Origin: Blepharisma stoltei ATCC 30299
Lineage: Eukaryota; Protista; Ciliophora
Assembly (NCBI GenBank): GCA_965603825.1
Contig: CBFDEM010000030.1
Span: 372,001-436,000, forward strand
Direction: 5' to 3'
DNA length: 64,000 nucleotides
The position numbers and the translations under genes are program-made. Positions 15,025-28,505 of this stretch are shown here, one piece after another; the stretch's first letter is position 1; each line of letters starts with the position of its first letter. The notes below the pieces were generated by a model. It was not told where the DNA came from. It worked only from the letters and a program-made list of their open reading frames with translations, and did no database searches.

Positions 15025-15191
15025 ATAAAAGTCTAAGCTAATTTTATAGAGATAGGATAAGGCCTTTATTTTGTCTAAAGACAGGTGTATTCTAAATTAT
15101 AATTTTGTTTAAAATTCAAGCATTAGATAAAGTAATAATTATAATTCTTTATGAATCAAGCTAAGGCCAAATATTTACCATATCATATAAT

Positions 15192-18100
15192 ATGGAGGCA
15201 GTAGGACACAAAAGACAAAAAATCGGAAATTTTAATTATACACTTACACCTACTGTATTACAAAATCTTGCTGACCTTGAGCTTTGTTTAAAGACGAAGT
15301 ATGGGTTATGCTTGATCGGACCTCCTTCTAGTGGTAAAACTACCTTGATTCAGATTTTGGCTGAGCAAAATGGCCATGAGCTTATAAGCCTTTTCATTGA
15401 CAGCTCGATTGATAGCAAGACTCTTCTAGGAACTTATCTATGCACTGAGGTGCCAGGTGAGTTTACATGGGTCCCAGGTCTTTTAACTCAAGCTGCTTTG
15501 GATGGGGCATGACTCATATTAGAGCAATTTGATAAGATGCCTGAAGACATCTATTGCCTTTTTTCGCATCTATTAGAAACTAACACACTACACATTCCAA
15601 ACAGAGGACAAATTATAAAGCCAGCAAATGGGTTTAGACTATTTGCCACAGCTGAAAAAATGCCAAGCCAATATAATCTGTCTAATTGGCTTACACATCA
15701 TATAATTCCGTTAAACGAAAGTGATTTATTTGACCTAGCTCCTTTAAGAATCAGCAAAAGCGATTTGTTAAGAGATTTATTAATTAAATGCTTCGGAGCT
15801 ATGAAAGAAATAAAAGGAAATGAATTGGTAAATCGAGACTGGTTCAAATTGTGCGATAGAGTGAATTATCATGTGAAAAATATTTATGGGGATAGAGAAA
15901 TGAATAATATAATCACTGAGAGCTTAAGAGAATTAATATTCCTCGAAGCTATGGGGGTTTTACTCGGAACAAGAGATAAAGCTCAAGCAATAGAGTGCTT
16001 AGCTGGATGCTTGAGCATAGACAAAGAGCATTTAAAAGCATTTTATGAAAACCGGACTATCAGACTAACACTAACTGAAGATTCTATACAGATTGGAAAA
16101 GCTCCAGGATTACCTACAAGCAATAAACCAAATTCAATTAACTTTGCATGCACTCCTTATACATTGAGGCTGCTCGAAAACTTATGCACTGGCATTGCTA
16201 GCTCAGAAAGTTTACTTCTAGTCGGAGAAACAGGGAATGGAAAAACAACCATCGTCCAATCCTTAGCAAAACTATTAGGTGCGAAACTATATGTACATAA
16301 CCTTAGCCAAGTATCTGATCCTTCAGATATTGTTGGCGGCTTTAAACCTATTGCCGTCTCAACATTACTATCTCCACTGGTATCTGACTATTACGACCTA
16401 ATCCCAATCATCCTTGACAAACCCAATTTTTCTCAACTTTTCAATAAACTTCGCAAATCTTTTACACAGCAAAAATGGCACAAAGTAATAAAATACATGC
16501 AAATTTCATATACAGAAATCCAAACCCTCCTTCAGAAAGGAACTATTTCTTTATCTGCAGAAATCATGCAAAAACTTACAAAGTTAACTGAAGAAACCAA
16601 AAGCACCGAAAATAAGCTAAAAGCATCCCATTTTGCGTTTCAATTTGTAGAAGGGTCTCTTGTCAAAGCATTAAAAGAAGGGTCATGGATTCTTCTAGAA
16701 GAAATAAACTTGGCTGAAAACGAAATGCTGGAAAGGCTTCATAGCGTTTTAGAAGGCAGAGGAATCACACTTGTAGAAAAAGCTGAAAGCAAAGAAATAA
16801 AGCCACATGTAAATTTTAGGCTGTTTGGATGTATGAACCCAGGAAAACAAGTTGGGAAAAAAGAGCTACCAAGCTCACTAAGGGCTAAGTTTACTGAAAT
16901 TTGGGTTGAAGAAATGGAGAGATTTGAAGATATAAAAGAAGTCGTTGTATGATATCTTGAAGGAAGAGCTGATAGAGGCATTATGGATAAAATCGTCAAT
17001 TTTTATCTTGAAACTAGAAAAATGTGCAGAGAAGGGATGCTTGAGGATGGTAGAGGGAAAATTCCTCAGTACTCGATGAGAACTTTATGTAGAGCACTCA
17101 GGTATGTGCAAGAATTTGGACCGCTATATGGGGTTCAGATATCATTGTTTAATGCTTTGAGGATTTTCTTCGAAACAATGCTGTCTCCCCAATCTCGGAT
17201 TGAGTTCTTGAAAATTGTAAAAAACCTTGACCCTCCACCTACAAGAATGCCAAAATCTCCCTCATCAGCACATATAGAACTCTTTGGGTTTTGGCATGAA
17301 AAAGGTCCATTACCTGAATTTAATGACCCTAATTTTATTTTGACTCCTTCTGTACGAGAATATTTAACACAATTATCCCGTGCAATAATTTTCAAAAATA
17401 ACGCAATTTTATTAGAAGGCCCCACAAGTAGCGGGAAAACCAGTATGGTGAAATATTTAGCTGGCTTAACAGGCCATGAGTTTCTAAGGATAAATAATCA
17501 CCAGCATACTGATATAGAAGAATATATAGGCTCTTATGTTTCAGATGAAAGAGGCAGACTTATATTCCTTGAAGGTCCACTAGTAAAAGCTGTAAAAGAA
17601 GGATATTTTGTAGTCCTTGATGAGCTTAATCTTGCCCCTTCTGAAGTATTAGAAGCTTTAAACAGGCTTCTTGATGACAATAGAGAACTTTTTATAACAG
17701 AAACACAAACCACTATTAAACCACACCCTCATTTCAGGCTATTTGCCACACAGAATCCTACTGGATATGCTGGGAGAAAAGAGCTTTCCAAAGCTTTTAG
17801 AAATAGGTTTGTAGAAATGTTTATTCCTGAACTGCCTGATTCTGAACTTATACAGATTTTGGAAAAAAGAGGAAAACTAGCACCTTCTTATGCACAAGTT
17901 TTGATTAATGTCATGAGGGAATTGCAAAGGCATCGACAACAAACTAGAGCATTTTTGGGGAGACAAGGGTTTATTACAATTAGAGATCTATTAAAAATAG
18001 CCAATAGAGAGCCTATTGGGTACGAACAATTGGGGCATTTCACTTTTGCAGTATTAGGAGAAAGACTGAGAAATGAAGAGGAAAAAGAATTTGTAAAAAG

Positions 18101-21100
18101 TGTGATAGAAAAAAACTGCAAAAAAATAAAAATTGATATGCCGAAATTTTATGATGAATACACAAAAAGCGAGAGCTTTCTAATGGATGTTGAAAGGCTA
18201 GACGAGACTATTGGAGTTGCAAGAGGACTAAGAAAAATTGCTTGGAATTCACATATGAAAAGACTATACACACTAGTAGACATGGCAACTAAATGCAATG
18301 AGCCTGTTCTTCTTGTAGGAGAAACTGGATGTGGAAAGACAACGATATGTCAAGCTTTAGCCTCTATGAGGAACACTGAGCTGAAATGTATTAACTGTCA
18401 TCAATATACAGAAACTTCAGATTTCATTGGAAGCCTTCAACCGATAAGAGATAGAACTACTTTAAATGAAAATGAGCAAGAAGGCGGCCATAAGCTCTTT
18501 GAATGGGCTGATGGGCCATTAGTTGAAGCTTATAACTTTGGCAAGTTTTTGCTGATTGATGAAATTTCTCTTGCAGATGACAGTGTTCTTGAAAGACTTA
18601 ACAGTGTTTTAGAAATTGATAGAAAGCTTCTGGTTCCTGAAAAGGGAGGAGAATGCAGCCTTGAAATGGCAGCAGCTGAAGGATTTCAGCTATTCGCAAC
18701 TATGAATCCTGGAGGAGATTATGGTAAAAAAGAACTTTCACCTGCATTGAGGAATAGATTTACTGAGATGTGGGTAAGAGTTGGGATAGAGGAAGTCAAC
18801 GAAGTGCTGATAACGATTTTAGATGCTGAGAAGACAACATTCCTTATAAGATTTATTGAATGGTACAACAGTTTTGCAAGGATTCCTTTATCTCTTAGAG
18901 ATGCTATAGCATGATGTGATTTCATCAAAAATTCTTCATTAGAGTTTTCTGTTTCTTTTTGGGAAGGTCTGTCAATGATCTTGCTGGATTACTCAGACGA
19001 TGCGAATAAAGCAAAATGCATGAAATTTATCATTGAAGAGCTTCAAATCCCAGAGCCAAAAATTGAGTATAATGTTACAGCTACACCTCAGCTATTTGGG
19101 ATTTCACCTTTTTTCATTGAAACCAATTCATTATCTCTATTAAGCAACTATTCTTTCAATGCACCAAACATAAAGAAAAGTCTTTATAGGCTATTAAGAG
19201 CAATACAGTTGAATAAGCCTATTATGCTAGAAGGTCCCCCAGGAGTCGGGAAAACAAGTATTGTTGAGTCACTTGGCAAAGTTACAGGACATAAAGTTAC
19301 AAGGATTAATCTTAGCGAAGAAACTGATTTAATTGATCTTTTAGGATGCGACATTCCTATAGGAGAAAGATTTGAGTGGTGTGACGGAGTTTTGCTTTCA
19401 GCTATCAAAGCTGGAGATTGGGTCATTCTTGATGAGCTTAATTTGTGTCCTCAACCAGTGATTGAGGGCTTAAATGCATTACTAGACCATAGAGCAACTG
19501 TCTATATCCCAGAAATAAACAAAGAAGTCCAATGCCCTATTTCATTCAGAATTTTTGCAGCACAGAACCCAGTAGCTCATGGAGGAGGCCGTAAAGGTCT
19601 TCCAAAGAGTTTTTTAAACAGATTCACAAAAATATATATCAGTGAGCTTACAAAAGAAGATTACATCAGAATTATCTCAGACATTTATCCTAATTTAGCT
19701 AATATCGACAAAATAGTAGAATTCAATGAAAAGGTAAAGACTCAAATCCAAGGACCCTGGGAGTTTAATTTAAGAGATATGCTGAGATGATGCCAAGGTG
19801 CTTCAATTGAACTTCTTTACTTCTATAGAACAAAAACACCAGAACATCGAGAAAAAATCCAAGAAATTTATTATGAAGTATTTGGTTGCCATCTAGTAAT
19901 TAGCCCAGTCCCTTATTATAGAGTCAACCCTGATTACGTAGAAATAGGAAAATGCAAAATTCCAAATCTTAAACCCAATACTAATTTAGCCTTTATTCCA
20001 AGCCAAATGAACATTTTAGAACAAGTCCTTTTTGCTATTGAAAAAAGGTGGCCAATTTTACTTGTAGGAGATCATTCAGTAGGCAAAACTTCAATATGCA
20101 GGCTAGCAAGTGTTTTGATGAATAAAAACTTATATGAATATACTTTAAGCCCAACTACTGACTCAAGCGAACTTTTAGGCTCATTTGAACAGAATGAAAA
20201 CGGTAAATTCGAGTGGTATGAAAGCACGCTAGCAAAAGCACTGAGAAATGGTGACTGGATTTTATTGAAAAACGCTAATCTTTGTCCTGCGTCTGTTCTT
20301 GACAGAATTAATTCATTAATGGAACCAAATGGAAGCTTGCTTATAAATGAGCGCGGCCAAGTAAATGGAGAAAGCTATATCCTTAGAGCCCATCCAGACT
20401 TTTGTATGTTTATTACTTTTAATCCAAAGCTTGGAGAAGTTTCAAGAGCACTTCGTAATAGATGCATTGAGATTTCAATGCTTGAGCATTATAACTATAT
20501 GGACGTGCTCAGAATAACTGGCTCTCATTTCGTCACAAAGGAGAGCTTTGCTCGTTTAATTAAAAATGGGTTTGGGGAAATTTTGAAGTGGGAAGAACTC
20601 AGCCGATCAATAGAAAATAAAGAAAAAAGCTATTCGTTATTGTTTGGAGATAGCATAGAAGATGAAATGGAGGTAGAAGAAAGATTGATGTTTGAGAAAT
20701 TAAGCAATATACTTAAATTGCCGATCGAGTCGTATTTAAATGAAGACTTAAAGTTTTTGGAAAAGTGAAATGACCATAATGAAGCTAAGGCATGCTTTTT
20801 TACAAATTCTTGCTACTTTGATTGCAATGAAAGAGCAAATCAAGTTAAAAATGGTAGTCTTGCTGAGTATTTTCAAAACATATGAAATGAATACAGCAAT
20901 AAGGGTATCTCAATAGGCTATTATACACCTCTTTTGAACCCAATTTGCCCTATCACTCAATATATTCCTTATGAAAATCAAGTTCATCATGCCTTAATGC
21001 TAAATTTATCAATTTTCAACCTATCATGGAAGGTGGATATTAACTTAAAGCAGCAAGTCGACTTATTCCTTTATCATATTGCAAGAGATGATTTCACCAA

Positions 21101-24100
21101 ACACAAAATAATTTCAAAATCAATTATACCAGATGAAATATCTCTATCTTATGAAAAGCCTCTTCTTTCGAAAGAGCTTATATCTTCATGAAAACAACGT
21201 GTCAGAACATCAATCAAAGCCTGCCCAATTCCTCTTGAAAAGTTTCCAGCTGTGCTATCATCAAATTTTGTAAAGAAACTAATGAGCAACATAAATTATT
21301 CTGAAGAATTCCCTAAAAGAAGAGTGGTAGTTGTATCTGGAGAAGAGTTTATTGACCAAGAAATCGGACTAATAATGGATAAAGAAACATGCCAAGCTGA
21401 GCAGCTGTTTTATATAGAAGAAATAAAAGATTTATATGAGCAGGTGCTATTAAGAGCATTATCAAGAATGGTAGACTCATCTTCACTCACTGATTTAGAT
21501 GTCATTCAATTTTTGAATAATGAGTATATACCAACTTCTCTATTAAAGCCTTTATGGATATTGAGGTATAAGGTAGGGCTTCCTTTTTCTATCAGAGAAA
21601 TCGCTTTACCTATCTTGCAAGCTCCAATTGTACCAGAAACTGATTTTCTGAAAATATATAGAGATTCTAAAGAAACAACAATTTTCAATGCTACCAAGCA
21701 TTGGTTTTTAATTAGAACTCTGCTGAAATGGCCTCAGGTCAAGTCATCTCTAGCAATTCCCAATTCGTATTTAGAGCTAGTATTTAATGAATTGACAAAT
21801 AAAATTGAAGGCTCAGAGCTAGAACTATATTTCACTAAAAATGAAAGCTATAAGGCTGTTGGTCTTGGGCTATGGCTTTATAAGCTTTATAAAGGCTTAA
21901 TATGTGATCCTTCAGAGCTTTATAAAGGCTTGTCTATTGATTATCAGCAAATGCAGCAAGAAATGGCACAGAGAGTTGAGATAAGGCAAGACTACAGTGC
22001 TTTTCGATATGGGTACAATTTTGATATTCCAATTATCACTTTCTATTCGCAATCCATCCAGCAGCTATCACAAAAAATAAATAAAGCTGAGCAAAATATA
22101 ATACCCAGGCCAGCAAACTCAGCAGATATTATCAGTTATATTACCAAGCTGCCTTCTTATGAAAGACTTTCTCAGCTTGTTTCTCACAACTTAACATCTT
22201 TGGAAACTGAAGGAACTCGTTATTTATTTGACTTATTGCAATCTTTTCTATCAACACTCATATCATACCAAACCATTTTCCCTGACCTTTGCTCTCCACT
22301 GTTAGAAGCATTGCTTCTTATTCAATATGGCTTAAAATCTCTTTCAATTATTCCATCTCCTGAATTTATCTATCCTTTTACTTTTTCAAGCATGCCAATT
22401 TCTCTTCAGTCCTCTCTTATTAAAGGTCACCTGTTCTATGACTCTTCATTCCTTCCTGAATTTCTAAGGCTTATTCTTGATTTAACTGAAATCAAAGAAT
22501 CTGAAGAGCCAAAAAAGCTAAAAATTGTTAAAACTACTGAGCTTGAAACTGTTCATACAATTGGTGAGCAGACAAGAGAAGAAAACATTAGAGAATATGA
22601 AGAAATTGAGAAGAGAGAAATAGAAAAATTGTTCCCAAAGTACAGAGATGAAAGGGCGTGGATACCTGTTGAAATGAAGAAGAGGAAAGAAATTATTGAA
22701 GCCTGGAAAGACTGGGAATTTGCATGTGGGACGAGGGATAATGAGCTTAAAAAAAGGTTTTTAGGGCTGATCAACCCAGAAATTGCAGGAGTTTTCTTAA
22801 GCAAACCTTTAGAAATCCACTTAAAAAATTTATGCAATGAATTCGAATATACCCCTGAAAAAGAAGCATACAATTTCTATTTAGATCCAAATCCAAAAGA
22901 AGCTATGGCAGCTTATACACCTTTAGTGAAACTTATTAGCAAGCTAGCAGATTTTCTTAAATTATTCCCAGACCACGAAATCCTTAAGGAAACTCAGTAC
23001 CTTGCTTATAAAGTCCTTTCTCGACCGCTTTTCTCAACGCCTCTAATGCAGCTAGTTTCAGGATTTGACAATGTTCTGAAACTAGCCCACGATTGGGAAG
23101 ACTATACAGGCTCAGAATATTCTCTAAAATCAGAACTTCATGAAATTTACGATTTGCTTAAAAGATGGAGAGAAAGTGAACTCCAAAACTGGGAAGGGCT
23201 ACTAGAGGCTAAAAAGTCAGAAATGATAGGACAAGATGCCAAGCTATGGGCTAGGCTGTTTAGAGTTCTTTATGTTGAAAAAGTTAGAGGGAAAGAACTT
23301 TATGAAGCTCTTGAAATGTATATCCGGTCATCAAGTTTAGGATGCTTCGAAAACAGGCTTAGAGTGCTGAAACTATTTGAAGACAAAGTAGACGCCGACC
23401 AAGTCCCATCTCTTCACCATATTTATGCATTTTATACCCAATTCCAAGAGCACTTCAATAAGACTATTGATTTTTATTTAGAACCTATAAAAAACAAGCT
23501 TAAAGAAATCGTAAAAATCGCCAGATTTAACGTCTCAAACTATCATGCATGGAGAGAAACTGCATTCAGAGCTCATAGGCAGCTGAATACCTTGATAAAA
23601 AAATACAAAGATGTGCTAGTCCTTAAATTCGAAGACGAAATTTTGAGAAAAATCAGGCAGGACTATTCAGAAAGTATCTTAGAGAAGCCTATACAAGTTC
23701 TCGAGACTGCAGAGCCTGATAATGTATTTGAGGAACTTTCATTAAGAATTTTCGAGAGGATTGAGACTATTAAAAATATAGAAAATGAACAAGGGATTAA
23801 ATATAGGTCTTTAATTGATTTATTGAATAATTTGAAAGAGCTAGGATTTAGCCAGTTTTACCATTCAAAAGATACAGAAAAATTGTCATTCAGTGAGCAG
23901 CCCGTAATTAATTATTATCCAGAAGAGTTGAAAGAAGTGATTGGCAAAGGAGAAGAGTATTATTATAGATGCATTGATAAATTGACCATTCTTCATTCAC
24001 TTATGGGGATTAATGATATAATTAAGCTAGAGGATAAAGAAAAATGTTTAGGGTATGCAATTTTTATTATGTATTCTTTGATTGAAGCAAGAAGAGCACT

Positions 24101-26693
24101 AGCTAGCTCTTTAGAAACTTATAAGGCTTATGCAAAACTGAATAATGAAGAAATGAAAGTAGTCTGCCAAATTAATGAAGTAGTAAAAGAAGCTGTTCTT
24201 GAAAATCTTCAGTTAGAAATAGATCAAGATACTGGCTTCAAGATATCATGCTTTAAAGTTTCAGGCACTATGAATGATCTATCTTTATGCAAAACTGCAT
24301 TAAGCCAGCTTTCAGAAATTCCAAAATATTCAGAAATTGCTTCTAGCCTCTCAGCAATTCTTCCGGAGCCGCGTTCGATTCCGAAATACTTAGAAAAATC
24401 TGAAATTCCAGACACTTATGTTGAGGATCTCACTTCTTATCCTTTGCCAGCTATATGCTCTTATTATAAAAGTCTTGGAAAGCTCTTATACATTTTAATC
24501 TCAATATTTTCCAGTCTTTTTTCAAAAGGATTTTGCGGCTCTGAAGAAGAAGAAGAAGCAGGTGAAGAGTCAGGCGAGCAGTTAGTTGAAGGGACTGGAC
24601 TTGGAGAAGGCAAAGGAAATAAAGATATCGGAGAGGAATTAATTGATGAAGAACAGTTCCAAGAACTTCAAAACCAAGAAGAAAGCGAACAAAAAGATGT
24701 GGACAAAGAAGGAGGAATGGATGTAAGGGAAGAATTTGAAGGAGAAGAAAGAAGCGCTGAAGGCAGTGAAGGCGAAGATATAGAAGGAAATGCCGAAGGA
24801 AACGAAAAACTTATGGAAGAAGAACAAGAAGCCCGCAAAGCTGAAGGAGAAGTAAGGGAGTCTGCAAACCCAGAGATGACCAAAGAATCAGAAATGGAAG
24901 CCGGACTTCAACCTCAAGATAGAGAAGGTGAAGCTGAAGACTTTGAAATGGCCCCACCAGAGTCAGGATCTGAAGAAAACATGGATATGGACATCGACGC
25001 CAAAGAAGAAGACTTAATAAACGTTGATAAAAGAAACGAAGACTACGAAAGTTCACAACAAGACAGCGGAGAAGAAAGCATGCAAGAAGACTCCGAAGCT
25101 GAACAAAACCAAACCAATGAACCCAACCTAAATGAAGCAGAAATGGAAGGTAAAGAGACAAAAGAAATAGAAGGATCCAGTGGAGAGGAAGAAGAAAAAA
25201 GATTAGAAGAATACAAGGACAGAGAATTCACAGATTATGATAAAGAAGCTTATGGGGTTGACAATCAAGCTGCAAACACTGATAAAATGAAAGGAAATGA
25301 AAATAAAGGAGAGCAAAATTCCAAAGATAAAGGAAGCTATACAGATGTCATTAGCCAGATGAAAGGTGAATGAAACTCCCAGCAGCAACAGCAGCAGAGT
25401 GAAACCGGTCAAAACCCAGAAACTGAAATAGAAGCCACTGTTAATGATGTAGAAACCGTAAATATGCCAGATGATATGAGTATAGACAGGCCAGAGTCCT
25501 CAAATATCTACACCTTTGACGAAAATTTCAATGATGTCACCTCAGCTCCCAGCTTAAAAAATAATCCCGAGCAAGAAGCAGGCAAACAAGTCCAGCCTAA
25601 AAAGTCAGAACGCAAAGAAAGGCCTAGAGAAGAAGTCAAAAGTGAAAGCTTCAAAACTTTTGACAGCACAAAGAGAGATGAGCAGAGAAACGTAATTCCA
25701 AAAATTGATATGATTAATTTCAATGAAGGGAATGTTGGAAGAAAAGGAACTCATAGAACTGGAGGAGAAGAAGTCCCTATGAGCATTGATAATAGCCTTT
25801 TAGATCCACTAGAAGAACTTGAAAAGCTTAGAAATCAAGTAAATATGGAAGCTTTTGAAAAAGGACTTGCTGAATGGGAAAACTACGAAAGAGAAACTAG
25901 TTATATTGCACAAGAGCTATGTGAACAGTTAAGAATCATCCTCGAGCCGACAAAAGCAAAAGGCCTTCAAGGGGATTATAAAACTGGTAAAAGAATCAAT
26001 ATGAAAAAAGTCATTGCTTACATTGCAAGCCAGTTTAGAAAAGATAAAATCTGGCTTAGAAGAACTAGACCTACTGCAAGAGAATATCAAGTACTTCTAG
26101 CTATTGATGATTCTTTTAGTATGAAGCAGCATGGACTAGGAGATATTGCGAAAAAAGGCTTATCAATTTTGGCCCAAGCTTTGCATAAGCTTGAAGTAGG
26201 AGAACTCGGGGTTGCAGGCATCAGAAATGGTATGAATTTATTACATGACTTTGGCCGGCCTTTTTCAAGCGACGAAGGAGGCTTTATTATGTCTCAGCTT
26301 GACTTTGAATATGGAAGAGATGTGGGCTCTGATACAGCATATCCAAGATTTATGCAGCAGTGCTATGATTATTTAGAAAAATGTGGAAACCAAAACATGC
26401 AGCTCGTTATTATTATTTCTGATGGAAGACTCAATAAAAACAAAGTCAGGCCATGGGTGAGAAAAAATGAAGGGATTTTCTTTTTATTTGTAATTGTTGA
26501 TAACCAAGAAAGTTCTATTATGGATATGCAGAGCGTTGTGTTTGAGAAAAAGGACGGGAAAAATTTAGTGAAGAAGACATCATATTTGGAAGATTTTCCT
26601 TTTGAATATTATGTTGTGGTACAAAATCCGGGATTGCTGGTTACAATTTTGTTGGATGTCATAAAGCAGTGGTTTGAACTGATGAAAGAATAA
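15192..26693 (+). CDS. MDN1: Midasin (Rea1) AAA-ATPase, 3833 aa
   Basis: Eight fragments in one frame joined by TGA at 15510, 16950, 18912, 19788, 20766, 20883, 21189 and 25371. Six Walker-A modules, a D/E-rich region, and a C-terminal MIDAS (DDSFSM, FRKDKIWLRRT). Confidence 0.96.
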
Positions 26694-27090
26694 ATAGCAT
26701 TAAGAATTAATTATTTCTTTATTTATTATCTATGCTAGTCTTTATATGCCAAAAGAACTGCCACTTATAAAAGTGGCTATTTTCAATATAATAGCCAGCT
26801 ACTTATTTTACTGTATTATATTCGCAAATATGCCATATCTAAATAATTATTTATAAGGCTTTTCAATTAGTATCGCAAACACTTTCTTCTCTCATATCCA
26901 TACCAGGCTATACTATAAAAATAAAGTAACCTAAAATTAATATCAAAAACAATTAAAAAAATTTTCCATGTTGAAAGATTTCAATAAAAAATTCTTATTC
27001 TGGATAAAAGACTGATAGAATTTCAGATCTAAAATATAGTAATTAAATTGATTTGAAAGCTTCCATTATTATTTTATATCCAACCGTAAT

Positions 27091-27351
27091 ATGGAAAGCA
27101 AGAAGGTTCGGGTATGGATCTGTGGATCTTGAGGTTACTGGAGTAAGGCCAATTTAACCAAACAAGCTTTAGTGCAAGAACTAAACTTATCAGACTCTCA
27201 AATCGAGTGCATGCCAGGTGAGCCAAGACAACTCAAAGTCGACGTTGTTATTGGTGGACAATCCCACACCGTAATCAGCAGAAAAGGAGCAGACTTTTTC
27301 CCAAGACATGCACCAATGGAAATTGTGGAGGCTGTAAGAAAATACTTCTAA
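27091..27351 (+). CDS. SelW/Rdx-family selenoprotein (CxxU), 86 aa
   Basis: MESKKVRVWICGS-TGA-GYWSKA...LKVDVVIGG...VISRKGADFFP...*. Matches the SelW pattern V.V.YCGxUGY and the Rdx C-terminal FP. SECIS-like hairpin directly downstream. Absent from the ORF track. Confidence 0.88.
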
Positions 27352-27361
27352 CTTCTCAATA

Positions 27362-27407
27362 TCTATGTGAAGGGATCACTTAAAGTTTAGTGATTTCTGA
27401 GGATAGA
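27362..27407 (+). promoter_or_regulatory. Eukaryotic SECIS element (GUGA-type)
   Basis: tctat-G-TGAA-gggatcact-tAAAgttt-agtgatttc-TGAG-g-ataga. Helix I (tctat/ataga), tandem GA/GA core, helix II with 9 pairs, unpaired AAA in the apical loop. Confidence 0.8.
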
Positions 27408-27971
27408 GTAAGCTAGATAATCATCATAATTATTCTTTTTTAAAAACTAACTGAGTTTTTATTTAATTATATTGCTCTGGTCAGTTGAAACTATGTGAAG
27501 AAAAATGTCAATAAAAAATATAGTGCAGGAATGAACTGGAAATTATAGCAAAAAATGCCATTTTTCAATTTCATAAAGAGAGGATATCATAAGCAAGGAT
27601 TTCTTTTGAATTAATTTTAATTTGTATAGTATAATAAATGAATATTGAATCTTTACGCATATAGCAAAAAAGTTATGCAAAATTGATTTAAAAGTTATCA
27701 AAACAGTAGTTAGTCTATACAAATAAACGATTTCTCAACGAATCGAGAAGTCAATAAATAAAATTATCATCATTTTCGAGCTAATTAAACTAAAAATTCT
27801 CATAATCAATATACTTAGTTTAATTCATTTAAAGGTAAAGCCCCAAGTCACTCTCTCAATATAAATCCTCATAAAAGCCTAAATATCTTCCAAATCCTTT
27901 ATTCCCCTCAATTATCTCCTCTAAATTTAAAATTAGACTGTTCTCAATAACTAATTCGTGGATTAAATAAA

Positions 27972-28505
27972 ATGGCATTAACTCGAATAGCTGCAGGCTT
28001 TACTCTCTTATTCACTTCCTCCACCTTATCTTCCTCCAACGAAAGAGTCAGTACAGAAGTCAAAGCTCGTGCAACTTTAACAGGGAAACTCGTCTCAGGA
28101 GAAGCTGAATTTTTCCAGCCTCGTTATACATTGAACACTGAAATTTCCATCAAAGCCACTGGACTTAACCCAAATAAGCCACACGGTCTACAAATTCATG
28201 AGGCTGGAAAAGACGGCCAAGTCGCAGAGATTTACAACCCATTTGCGAGAAAGCATGGAGGTCCTTGGAGCACAGAAAGAAAAGTAGGAGATCTAGGAAA
28301 CATCAAGGGAGATGAAAAAGGGGAAGGAGCTTTAAAGGTTTCTGACCCATATGTAAAATTGAGTGGGAAGTTCTCTGTTATTGGAAAAATTCTTGCAATT
28401 CATGAAAATCCAGATGACCTTGGATATGGGAGAAATGATCAAAGTCTTATTGATGGGCAGGCTGGGCCAGCAATCTCAAGTGGAGCCATCAGCCAAGTAA
28501 GCTAA
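27972..28505 (+). CDS. Cu/Zn superoxide dismutase-fold protein with degenerate metal ligands
   Basis: HGLQIHE, KHGGP, VGDLGNI and IHENPDDLG. Several His ligands, the catalytic Arg and the disulfide Cys are replaced. N-terminal targeting-like peptide. Confidence 0.85.
   Translation: MALTRIAAGFTLLFTSSTLSSSNERVSTEVKARATLTGKLVSGEAEFFQPRYTLNTEISIKATGLNPNKPHGLQIHEAGKDGQVAEIYNPFARKHGGPWSTERKVGDLGNIKGDEKGEGALKVSDPYVKLSGKFSVIGKILAIHENPDDLGYGRNDQSLIDGQAGPAISSGAISQVS

Follow-up and report, generated by a model that had tools for sequence, protein, structure and literature searches.

In the ciliate Euplotes crassus, the codon UGA is decoded as either Cys or Sec (Turanov et al. 2009 Science, as cited in PMC12153298). 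UGA is a sense codon in this organism and never a stop, it is additionally read as Sec in SECIS-bearing mRNAs, and the competitor for Sec insertion is an elongator tRNA rather than eRF1. A double meaning of UGA, as Trp and as Sec, has been described from sequence in other genomes, namely in Condylostoma magnum and Parduczia sp., where UGA is also a stop and the term ‘codon triality’ (Trp/stop/Sec) was used (Swart et al. 2016, PMC4967479), in Amoebophrya (PMC6394959), and in Blastocrithidia for the protein SelTryp (PMC12153298). In all four, Trp is the genome-wide meaning of UGA and Sec its meaning in mRNAs with a SECIS, the Sec machinery including tRNA-Sec is retained, and the 3′ UTRs are very short with the SECIS located close to the coding end. 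The principle of Trp/Sec dual use of UGA is therefore not new, and in this respect the original prediction from which the present analysis started overstated the novelty of its proposal. The SelW-like genes described here are new examples of the principle and are useful for annotation.

The window analysed is a continuous stretch of 64,000 nucleotides from Blepharisma stoltei ATCC 30299, taken from an assembly of 41.46 Mb in 64 contigs. The somatic genome of this strain has been reported as 41 Mbp, AT-rich, and using UGA as a Trp codon (PMC9942806). The window contains an 86-codon ORF with an in-frame TGA and a hairpin behind its stop codon (Table 1). Based on comparative evidence from sequences, we conclude that the UGA at codon 14 of this ORF very probably encodes Sec as the selected product, and that the ORF is an expressed gene for an Rdx/SelW-like oxidoreductase.

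Table 1. Coordinates of the features discussed. Positions without a contig name are those of the window.
Feature	Position	Strand	Basis or remark
Midasin (MDN1/Rea1) gene, in-window control for UGA = Trp	15165..26693	+	3842 codons, provided TGA is sense
Small mRNA, approximate extent: ~22 nt 5′ UTR, CDS, ~99 nt 3′ UTR with predicted SECIS	27069..27450	+	Run contigs
CDS, 86-residue Rdx/SelW-like selenoprotein (predicted)	27091..27351	+	ATG at 27091, TAA at 27349-27351
Redox motif Cys-Gly-Ser-Sec (predicted Sec), TGT GGA TCT TGA	27121..27132	+	Predicted Sec codon TGA at 27130-27132
Predicted SECIS element, form 1	27362..27407	+	Fold, covariation, covariance-model matches
SECIS helix I	27362-27366 / 27403-27407	+	Fold
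SECIS core	5′ G-UGA 27367-27370, 3′ GA 27399-27400	+	Fold
SECIS helix II, 10 bp	27371-27380 / 27389-27398	+	Fold
SECIS apical loop, 8 nt, UAAAGUUU	27381-27388	+	AAA at 27382-27384
Distant paralog, 248-residue fusion	contig 35: 719514-720245	minus	HMG box (PF00505, E = 5.3e-8) N-terminal
Rdx-family match with Trp-TGA, negative example	contig 33: 202489-202734	minus	PF10262 six-frame search
Sec-GPx gene (predicted)	contig 62: 663039-663362; SECIS 662844-662888	minus	TGA at catalytic Cys position

UGA as a minority Trp codon

The default meaning of UGA can be read from the window itself. Its longest ORF, which encodes midasin, grows from 1393 to 3842 codons once TGA is counted as sense. This ORF contains eight in-frame TGA codons, and the pieces between them align collinearly to solved midasin chains. 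In yeast midasin (6i27_A), residue 332 is the last to which the piece preceding the TGA at 15510-15512 aligns, the unaligned last residue of this piece corresponding to position 333. The piece following this TGA aligns from residue 336, so that its first residue extrapolates to position 335. The TGA thus faces W334 of the yeast protein, the invariant Trp of a conserved Gly-x-Trp-Val-Leu-Ile-Glu motif. Across 15 long ORFs in the window, Trp is encoded by TGA 40 times and by TGG 118 times (40/158, or 25%). UGA is an ordinary, minority Trp codon in B. stoltei, and these observations, along with the published genome (PMC9942806), uphold the default Trp reading from which the original prediction proceeded. 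The midasin gene ends ∼400 bases upstream of the ATG of the selenoprotein gene.

How this codon is read in Blepharisma has been described previously (10.1101/2023.10.09.561518). No nuclear tRNA-Trp(UCA) is reported in that study, and UGA is read by a tRNA-Trp(CCA) with a 4-bp anticodon stem, which is near-cognate for UGA with a C-A mismatch at the wobble position. The same study describes UGA as not observed as a stop and as recognised weakly by eRF1, and gives tRNA-Sec(UCA) as the only nuclear tRNA so far reported that is cognate for UGA.

TGA at the redox position of an Rdx-fold protein

Translation of 27091-27407, together with a reading of the surroundings at 26700-27800, gave 86 sense codons between the ATG and the TAA. 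The single in-frame TGA is codon 14, and its context is Val-Arg-Val-Trp-Ile-Cys-Gly-Ser-TGA-Gly-Tyr-Trp. Both Trp residues of the ORF, which flank the motif, are encoded by TGG (27115-27117 and 27139-27141). The ORF, the position of the TGA and the use of TGG at both flanking residues are as originally described. The ORF had also been called hidden, which is not so in public data, because an identical 86-residue protein has been deposited with Trp at the TGA codon. Its paralog, listed as a Blepharisma stoltei protein, is likewise in the protein database, and both entries are unnamed with W at this codon.

The database entry would be correct if UGA14 were read only as Trp. The product would then be a Cys-x-x-Trp protein of the Rdx fold, and the hairpin behind the stop codon would be a generic UTR or 3′-end structure. 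This reading agrees with the public annotation and with the bona fide role of UGA as a Trp codon in B. stoltei, but no function is known for a Trp in place of the nucleophile of a CxxC/CxxU fold.

Assignment of the protein to a family by sequence profile gave a weak result. The Pfam Rdx profile (PF10262) aligns to the 86-residue protein over profile positions 1-72 of 74 with a score of 12.2 bits (E = 0.21; cut-off 22.6). Neither the paralog nor the 72-residue piece after the TGA gave a Pfam match, and a six-frame search of the genome with PF10262 did not recover the selenoprotein locus. When solved structures were searched by sequence with the 86-residue protein, no SelW was among the matches, which were all spurious ones to leucine-rich repeats. 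The input to an AlphaFold2 model was the deposited protein, which has W at codon 14, together with five relatives. The model has a mean pLDDT of 95.6 and a pTM of 0.85, and its topology is β1-α1-β2-β3-β4-α2, with β1 formed by residues 4-11 and α1 by residues 16-31, which places Cys11-Gly-Ser-TGA14 at the β1-α1 junction. When the model was compared with the PDB using Foldseek, the matches ranked 1-21 were all SelW-related or Rdx proteins (probability 1.00, TM 0.61-0.70). The top matches (2fa8, 3dex, 2p0g, 2ojl, 2obk and 2oka) are all SelW-related, and the closest ESM-Atlas clusters are annotated as Rdx. Of the two redox positions of the CxxC/CxxU motif, the TGA occupies precisely the second in the modelled fold. 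The protein is filed on the basis of this model as Rdx-fold and SelW-like, with no claim of orthology to animal SelW. The proposal of a SelW-like protein with TGA at the CxxU position is thus supported by the predicted fold and its structural neighbours. As to the Rdx family, the profile score stayed below the cut-off, and the codons of the homologs, described below, were all TGA.

The one match of the six-frame search with PF10262 that contains an in-frame TGA is an Rdx-family match on contig 33. As a candidate selenoprotein it was rejected, since the TGA is an ordinary Trp codon (Ala-Arg-TGA-Pro) and the locus has neither a CxxU motif nor a downstream SECIS. Its clear Trp-TGA is a point on the side of the Trp-only reading of codon 14.

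The B. stoltei genome contains two paralogs of the SelW-like gene, on contig 27 (85% identity) and on contig 35 (31% identity), and both have the motif Cys-Gly-Ser-TGA-Gly-Tyr. The contig 27 paralog has an intact reading frame with mostly synonymous or conservative changes. In the contig 35 paralog both flanking Trp residues are substituted, while the TGA motif is kept. This distant paralog is a fusion in which the HMG box is followed by a Lys-rich linker and a C-terminal SelW-like Cys-Gly-Ser-TGA domain, and it has its own predicted SECIS. Its organisation resembles that of the nuclear selenoprotein H, in which an Rdx Sec domain is likewise joined to a module for DNA binding.

When 1.84 billion representatives were searched exhaustively by profile, only four further true relatives were found, all of them metagenomic. 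The large matches in this search were to unrelated repeat proteins (Ig-like, secretin and LRR) and were discarded. Three of the four relatives had originally been called as C-terminal fragments of 49-64 residues, which is the usual fate of selenoproteins under a standard-code gene caller. The N-termini absent from these calls are present on the contigs, and the motifs recovered there are Cys-Gly-Ala-TGA-Gly-Phe, Cys-Gly-Ser-TGA-Gly-Tyr, TGA-Arg-Ser-TGA-Gly-Phe and TGA-Gly-Gly-TGA-Gly-Phe. The last two suggest Sec-x-x-Sec proteins. One of this pair had been called with both TGA codons as Trp and the other had been truncated by the gene caller.

Among the two paralogs and the four environmental homologs, neither TGG nor a Cys codon was found at the redox position, which is TGA in every one. 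Retention of a minority codon in every lineage is unexpected for Trp and favours Sec. With TGA accounting for 25% of Trp codons, its presence in all three B. stoltei copies would have a probability of ∼0.02 under the Trp-only reading if the copies were independent. The TGA at the Cys position of two of the four environmental homologs also argues against that reading, as it makes sense for Sec and not for Trp.

Contigs from three B. stoltei sequencing runs cover only the small mRNA interval of Table 1 within an 801-nt stretch, with high word depth, and the flanks are bare. These runs are RNA by guess and their contigs cannot fix transcript ends, but coverage of this interval without its flanks is expected of a transcript and not of genomic DNA. 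Transcription probably runs through the hairpin. A run from a second organism contains two diverged copies, ∼94% and 85% identical, that span both the ORF and the hairpin. The gene might be regarded as a decaying or untranslated copy in which the TGA is inconsequential, on the grounds of its very short ORF, unnamed protein and weak profile match. We consider this extremely improbable in view of the likely-RNA contigs that cover ORF and hairpin at high word depth, the two diverged copies in the second organism, the intact frame of the paralog at 85% identity and the very confident fold model. Further downstream, in the intergenic region, weak C/D-box snoRNA-like matches with UGAUGA and CUGA-like boxes are present on the minus strand at 27707-27779 (SNORD41, E = 0.91; snoMe28S-Gm3255, 22.9 bits), all below the gathering scores.

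The hairpin downstream of the stop codon

The original prediction placed a SECIS-shaped hairpin ∼10 nt past the TAA, and a hairpin is indeed found there. It begins 11 nt past the TAA, which puts it ∼235 nt 3′ of the UGA at codon 14. Its unpaired apical AAA starts 11 nt past the UGA core. The folding energy is modestly unusual (z = −2.0), with 9 of 200 shuffled sequences folding as well, and an Rfam scan of 26500-28000 with E values up to 10 returned no SECIS family, giving only weak, unrelated matches. The lack of a match to the Rfam SECIS models is in accord with the Trp-only reading, and, given this result and the unremarkable stability, the case for a SECIS must rest on comparative evidence.

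A hairpin is located directly 3′ of the stop codon in all three Blepharisma copies of the gene. Between the close paralogs, one pair of helix II changes from A-U to G-C and another from C-G to U-G. In the contig 35 paralog the sequence of helix II is almost wholly different, yet its geometry is identical. A covariance model trained on the three Blepharisma hairpin copies (R1) matches all four metagenomic homologs, 11-26 nt past the stop codon and on the correct strand. Its best non-training match in 128 kb is a hairpin that lies 11 nt after the stop codon of a glutathione peroxidase (GPx) paralog. An alignment of eight elements was fitted to the model, by which the pair counts are inflated; a model-guided alignment was preferred because MAFFT alone shifted the GPx SECIS by one base. 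The U.G, G.A and A.G core pairs and the apical AAA are common to all eight elements, and nine of the ten pairs of helix II show changes on both sides. Sliding the 3′ partner lowers the share of paired cells over all 13 pairs from 79% to 28-54%, and none of 500 shuffles reached the observed covariation values. A three-sequence MAFFT alignment shows the same covariation trend.

The hairpin associated with GPx provides a control from a different protein family. The genome has seven full-length GPx paralogs, six with the catalytic Cys and one with TGA, and it is the TGA-bearing paralog that is followed, 11 nt after its TAA, by the same type of hairpin as that of the SelW-like gene. Judged from its sequence, the TGA-bearing GPx is a textbook selenoprotein, independent of the SelW-like gene, which represents a second predicted selenoprotein family in the genome and serves as a positive control. 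Scans of the 41-Mb genome with R1 and a further model, R2, gave convincing scores only for the three paralog copies and the one GPx copy. The scans each score 150 first-look candidates and do not amount to an exhaustive selenoproteome. Additional low-scoring matches in these scans were rejected, as none had a plausible upstream ORF or a SECIS core. With only four convincing elements genome-wide, the hairpin is not a common 3′-end structure.

The hairpin is, by comparative sequence analysis, a conserved SECIS with form-1 anatomy and a predicted role in recoding. The SECIS-shaped hairpin of the original prediction is thus substantiated by an invariant core, a covarying helix II and its presence in all family members. 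The Trp-only reading does not account for the retention of the SECIS-defining bases through extensive compensatory change, or for the recurrence of the hairpin behind a GPx in which TGA replaces the catalytic Cys. When these findings are taken with the pattern of TGA among the homologs, it is very unlikely that UGA14 is read only as Trp.

Recoding at codon 14 and relation to known systems

The components expected for Sec synthesis and insertion were all found in the B. stoltei genome. The tRNA-Sec(UCA) gene is found on the contig of the window, 337 kb further upstream. With the Rfam tRNA-Sec model it scores 75.6 bits, and ARAGORN calls it SeC; a B. stoltei tRNA-Sec had already been published (10.1101/2023.10.09.561518). 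Homologs of SPS2/SelD (213.9 bits) and SepSecS (423 bits) are present. PSTK is represented by a second KTI12-family gene whose best match is archaeal PSTK, eEFSec by an EF-Tu-like protein (1.7e-132 versus human eEFSec, 5izk), and SBP2 by an L7Ae-domain protein (1.2e-20 versus human SECISBP2, 7zjw_B). The SPS2/SelD gene (contig 13: 721728-722546) has Cys, not TGA, in the Gly-Cys-Ser-Cys-Lys active-site loop, so this enzyme of the Sec pathway is not itself a selenoprotein in B. stoltei.

We propose that SBP2 would bind the kink-turn core of the SECIS on the SelW-like mRNA and recruit eEFSec with Sec-tRNA(UCA), whereupon codon 14 would be read as Sec. The resulting 86-residue, thioredoxin-fold oxidoreductase would have the active site Cys11-Gly-Ser-Sec14. 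Because tRNA-Trp(CCA), which reads UGA, is near-cognate and eRF1 recognises the codon weakly, the competitor at codon 14 would be the near-cognate Trp elongator tRNA. Failed recoding would then be expected to result in a full-length Trp14 protein and not in a truncated one. Both the competition with an elongator tRNA and this outcome had been put forward in the original prediction and are reasonable. Insertion of Sec at UGA under the control of a SECIS, alongside the default Trp, is supported by the predicted fold, the kept TGA, the hairpin and the machinery.

In mammals, Sec is inserted inefficiently even where the competitor is a release factor. By this precedent both products might be made in B. 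stoltei, with the Trp14 protein as the major form and the Sec protein as a minor, selenium-dependent fraction, if Trp-tRNA and eEF1A outcompete eEFSec at most ribosomes. The competing elongator tRNA-Trp is also the one that decodes ∼44,000 UGA codons genome-wide (10.1101/2023.10.09.561518). However, the strong purifying conservation of the TGA and the SECIS, both among species and between paralogs with 31% identity, implies selection for the Sec form, and tRNA-Sec(UCA) is cognate for UGA whereas the Trp tRNA carries a C-A wobble mismatch. Moreover, the choice between Cys and Sec at UGA is position-specific in Euplotes (Turanov 2009, cited in PMC12153298). A predominantly Trp14 product is consequently judged unlikely, and Sec at codon 14 is retained as the preferred reading.

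A broader interpretation is offered tentatively and may well prove wrong. The genes could belong to a previously unrecognised, protist-specific Rdx family that occurs only in the Sec form and includes Sec-x-x-Sec members and an HMG-box fusion. Synthesis in Blepharisma would require that SECIS-directed Sec-tRNA outcompetes the near-cognate Trp-tRNA, and selenium supply would set the ratio of Sec14 to Trp14 isoforms and not that of full-length to truncated protein.

A literature search found no paper on Blepharisma selenoprotein genes, and the genome paper was absent from the results for ‘Blepharisma’ plus ‘selenocysteine’. The corrected SelW-like genes and the predicted Sec-GPx are, as far as this search shows, the first concrete Blepharisma selenoprotein genes. 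Public annotation, in which all three copies are unnamed and have Trp at the active site, hides this predicted selenoprotein family.

Compared with known SelW/Rdx proteins (PF10262; 2fa8, 3dex and 2p0g), the Blepharisma protein has a similar length of ∼85 residues, the same β1-α1-β2-β3-β4-α2 thioredoxin-like fold in the model with a predicted CxxU between β1 and α1, and a Gly...Phe-Pro segment before the last helix. The Cys-Gly-x-Sec-Gly-Tyr/Phe context presumably resembles the motif of animal SelW. The protein differs in having diverged below the Pfam threshold and so far that its sequence retrieves no solved SelW. The Blepharisma-type family differs further in that only TGA-containing members and no Cys homologs were found, some members having TGA at both motif positions.

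The predicted SECIS shares with canonical form-1 elements (Rfam SECIS_1) a helix I, an internal loop, a kink-turn core with (A/G)UGA and GA and with tandem G.A/A.G pairs, an unpaired apical AAA 11 nt after the core, and a location in the 3′ UTR. In the canonical form the UGA is more commonly preceded by A, but in the Blepharisma type it is preceded by G (AUGUGA or AAGUGA). The apical loop, at 8 nt, is short, the stop codon is only 11-26 nt away from the start of the element, and the Rfam models give it no score.

With respect to the use of UGA, B. stoltei resembles Condylostoma, Parduczia, Amoebophrya and Blastocrithidia in the general features outlined at the outset. It differs from the triality of Condylostoma and Parduczia in that UGA is not observed as a stop and would have two meanings only. 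The published Trp/Sec examples concern thioredoxin reductase, SelT/M/O and SelK/T/Tryp, and the Blepharisma family is SelW-like instead. Blepharisma is culturable, has a complete somatic genome, and uses UGA, as far as observed, only as a sense codon. It would therefore be a clean system in which SECIS, SBP2 and eEFSec are set against ordinary elongation and not against termination. Competition between Sec and an elongator tRNA has so far been examined experimentally only for Cys and Sec in Euplotes. Euplotes crassus is like Blepharisma a ciliate with UGA as a sense codon. Its default amino acid is Cys, delivered by a cognate tRNA-Cys(UCA), whereas that of Blepharisma is Trp, delivered by the near-cognate tRNA-Trp with its CCA anticodon and 4-bp anticodon stem. 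Dual decoding was verified by labelling in Euplotes, while for Blepharisma it is predicted from sequence.
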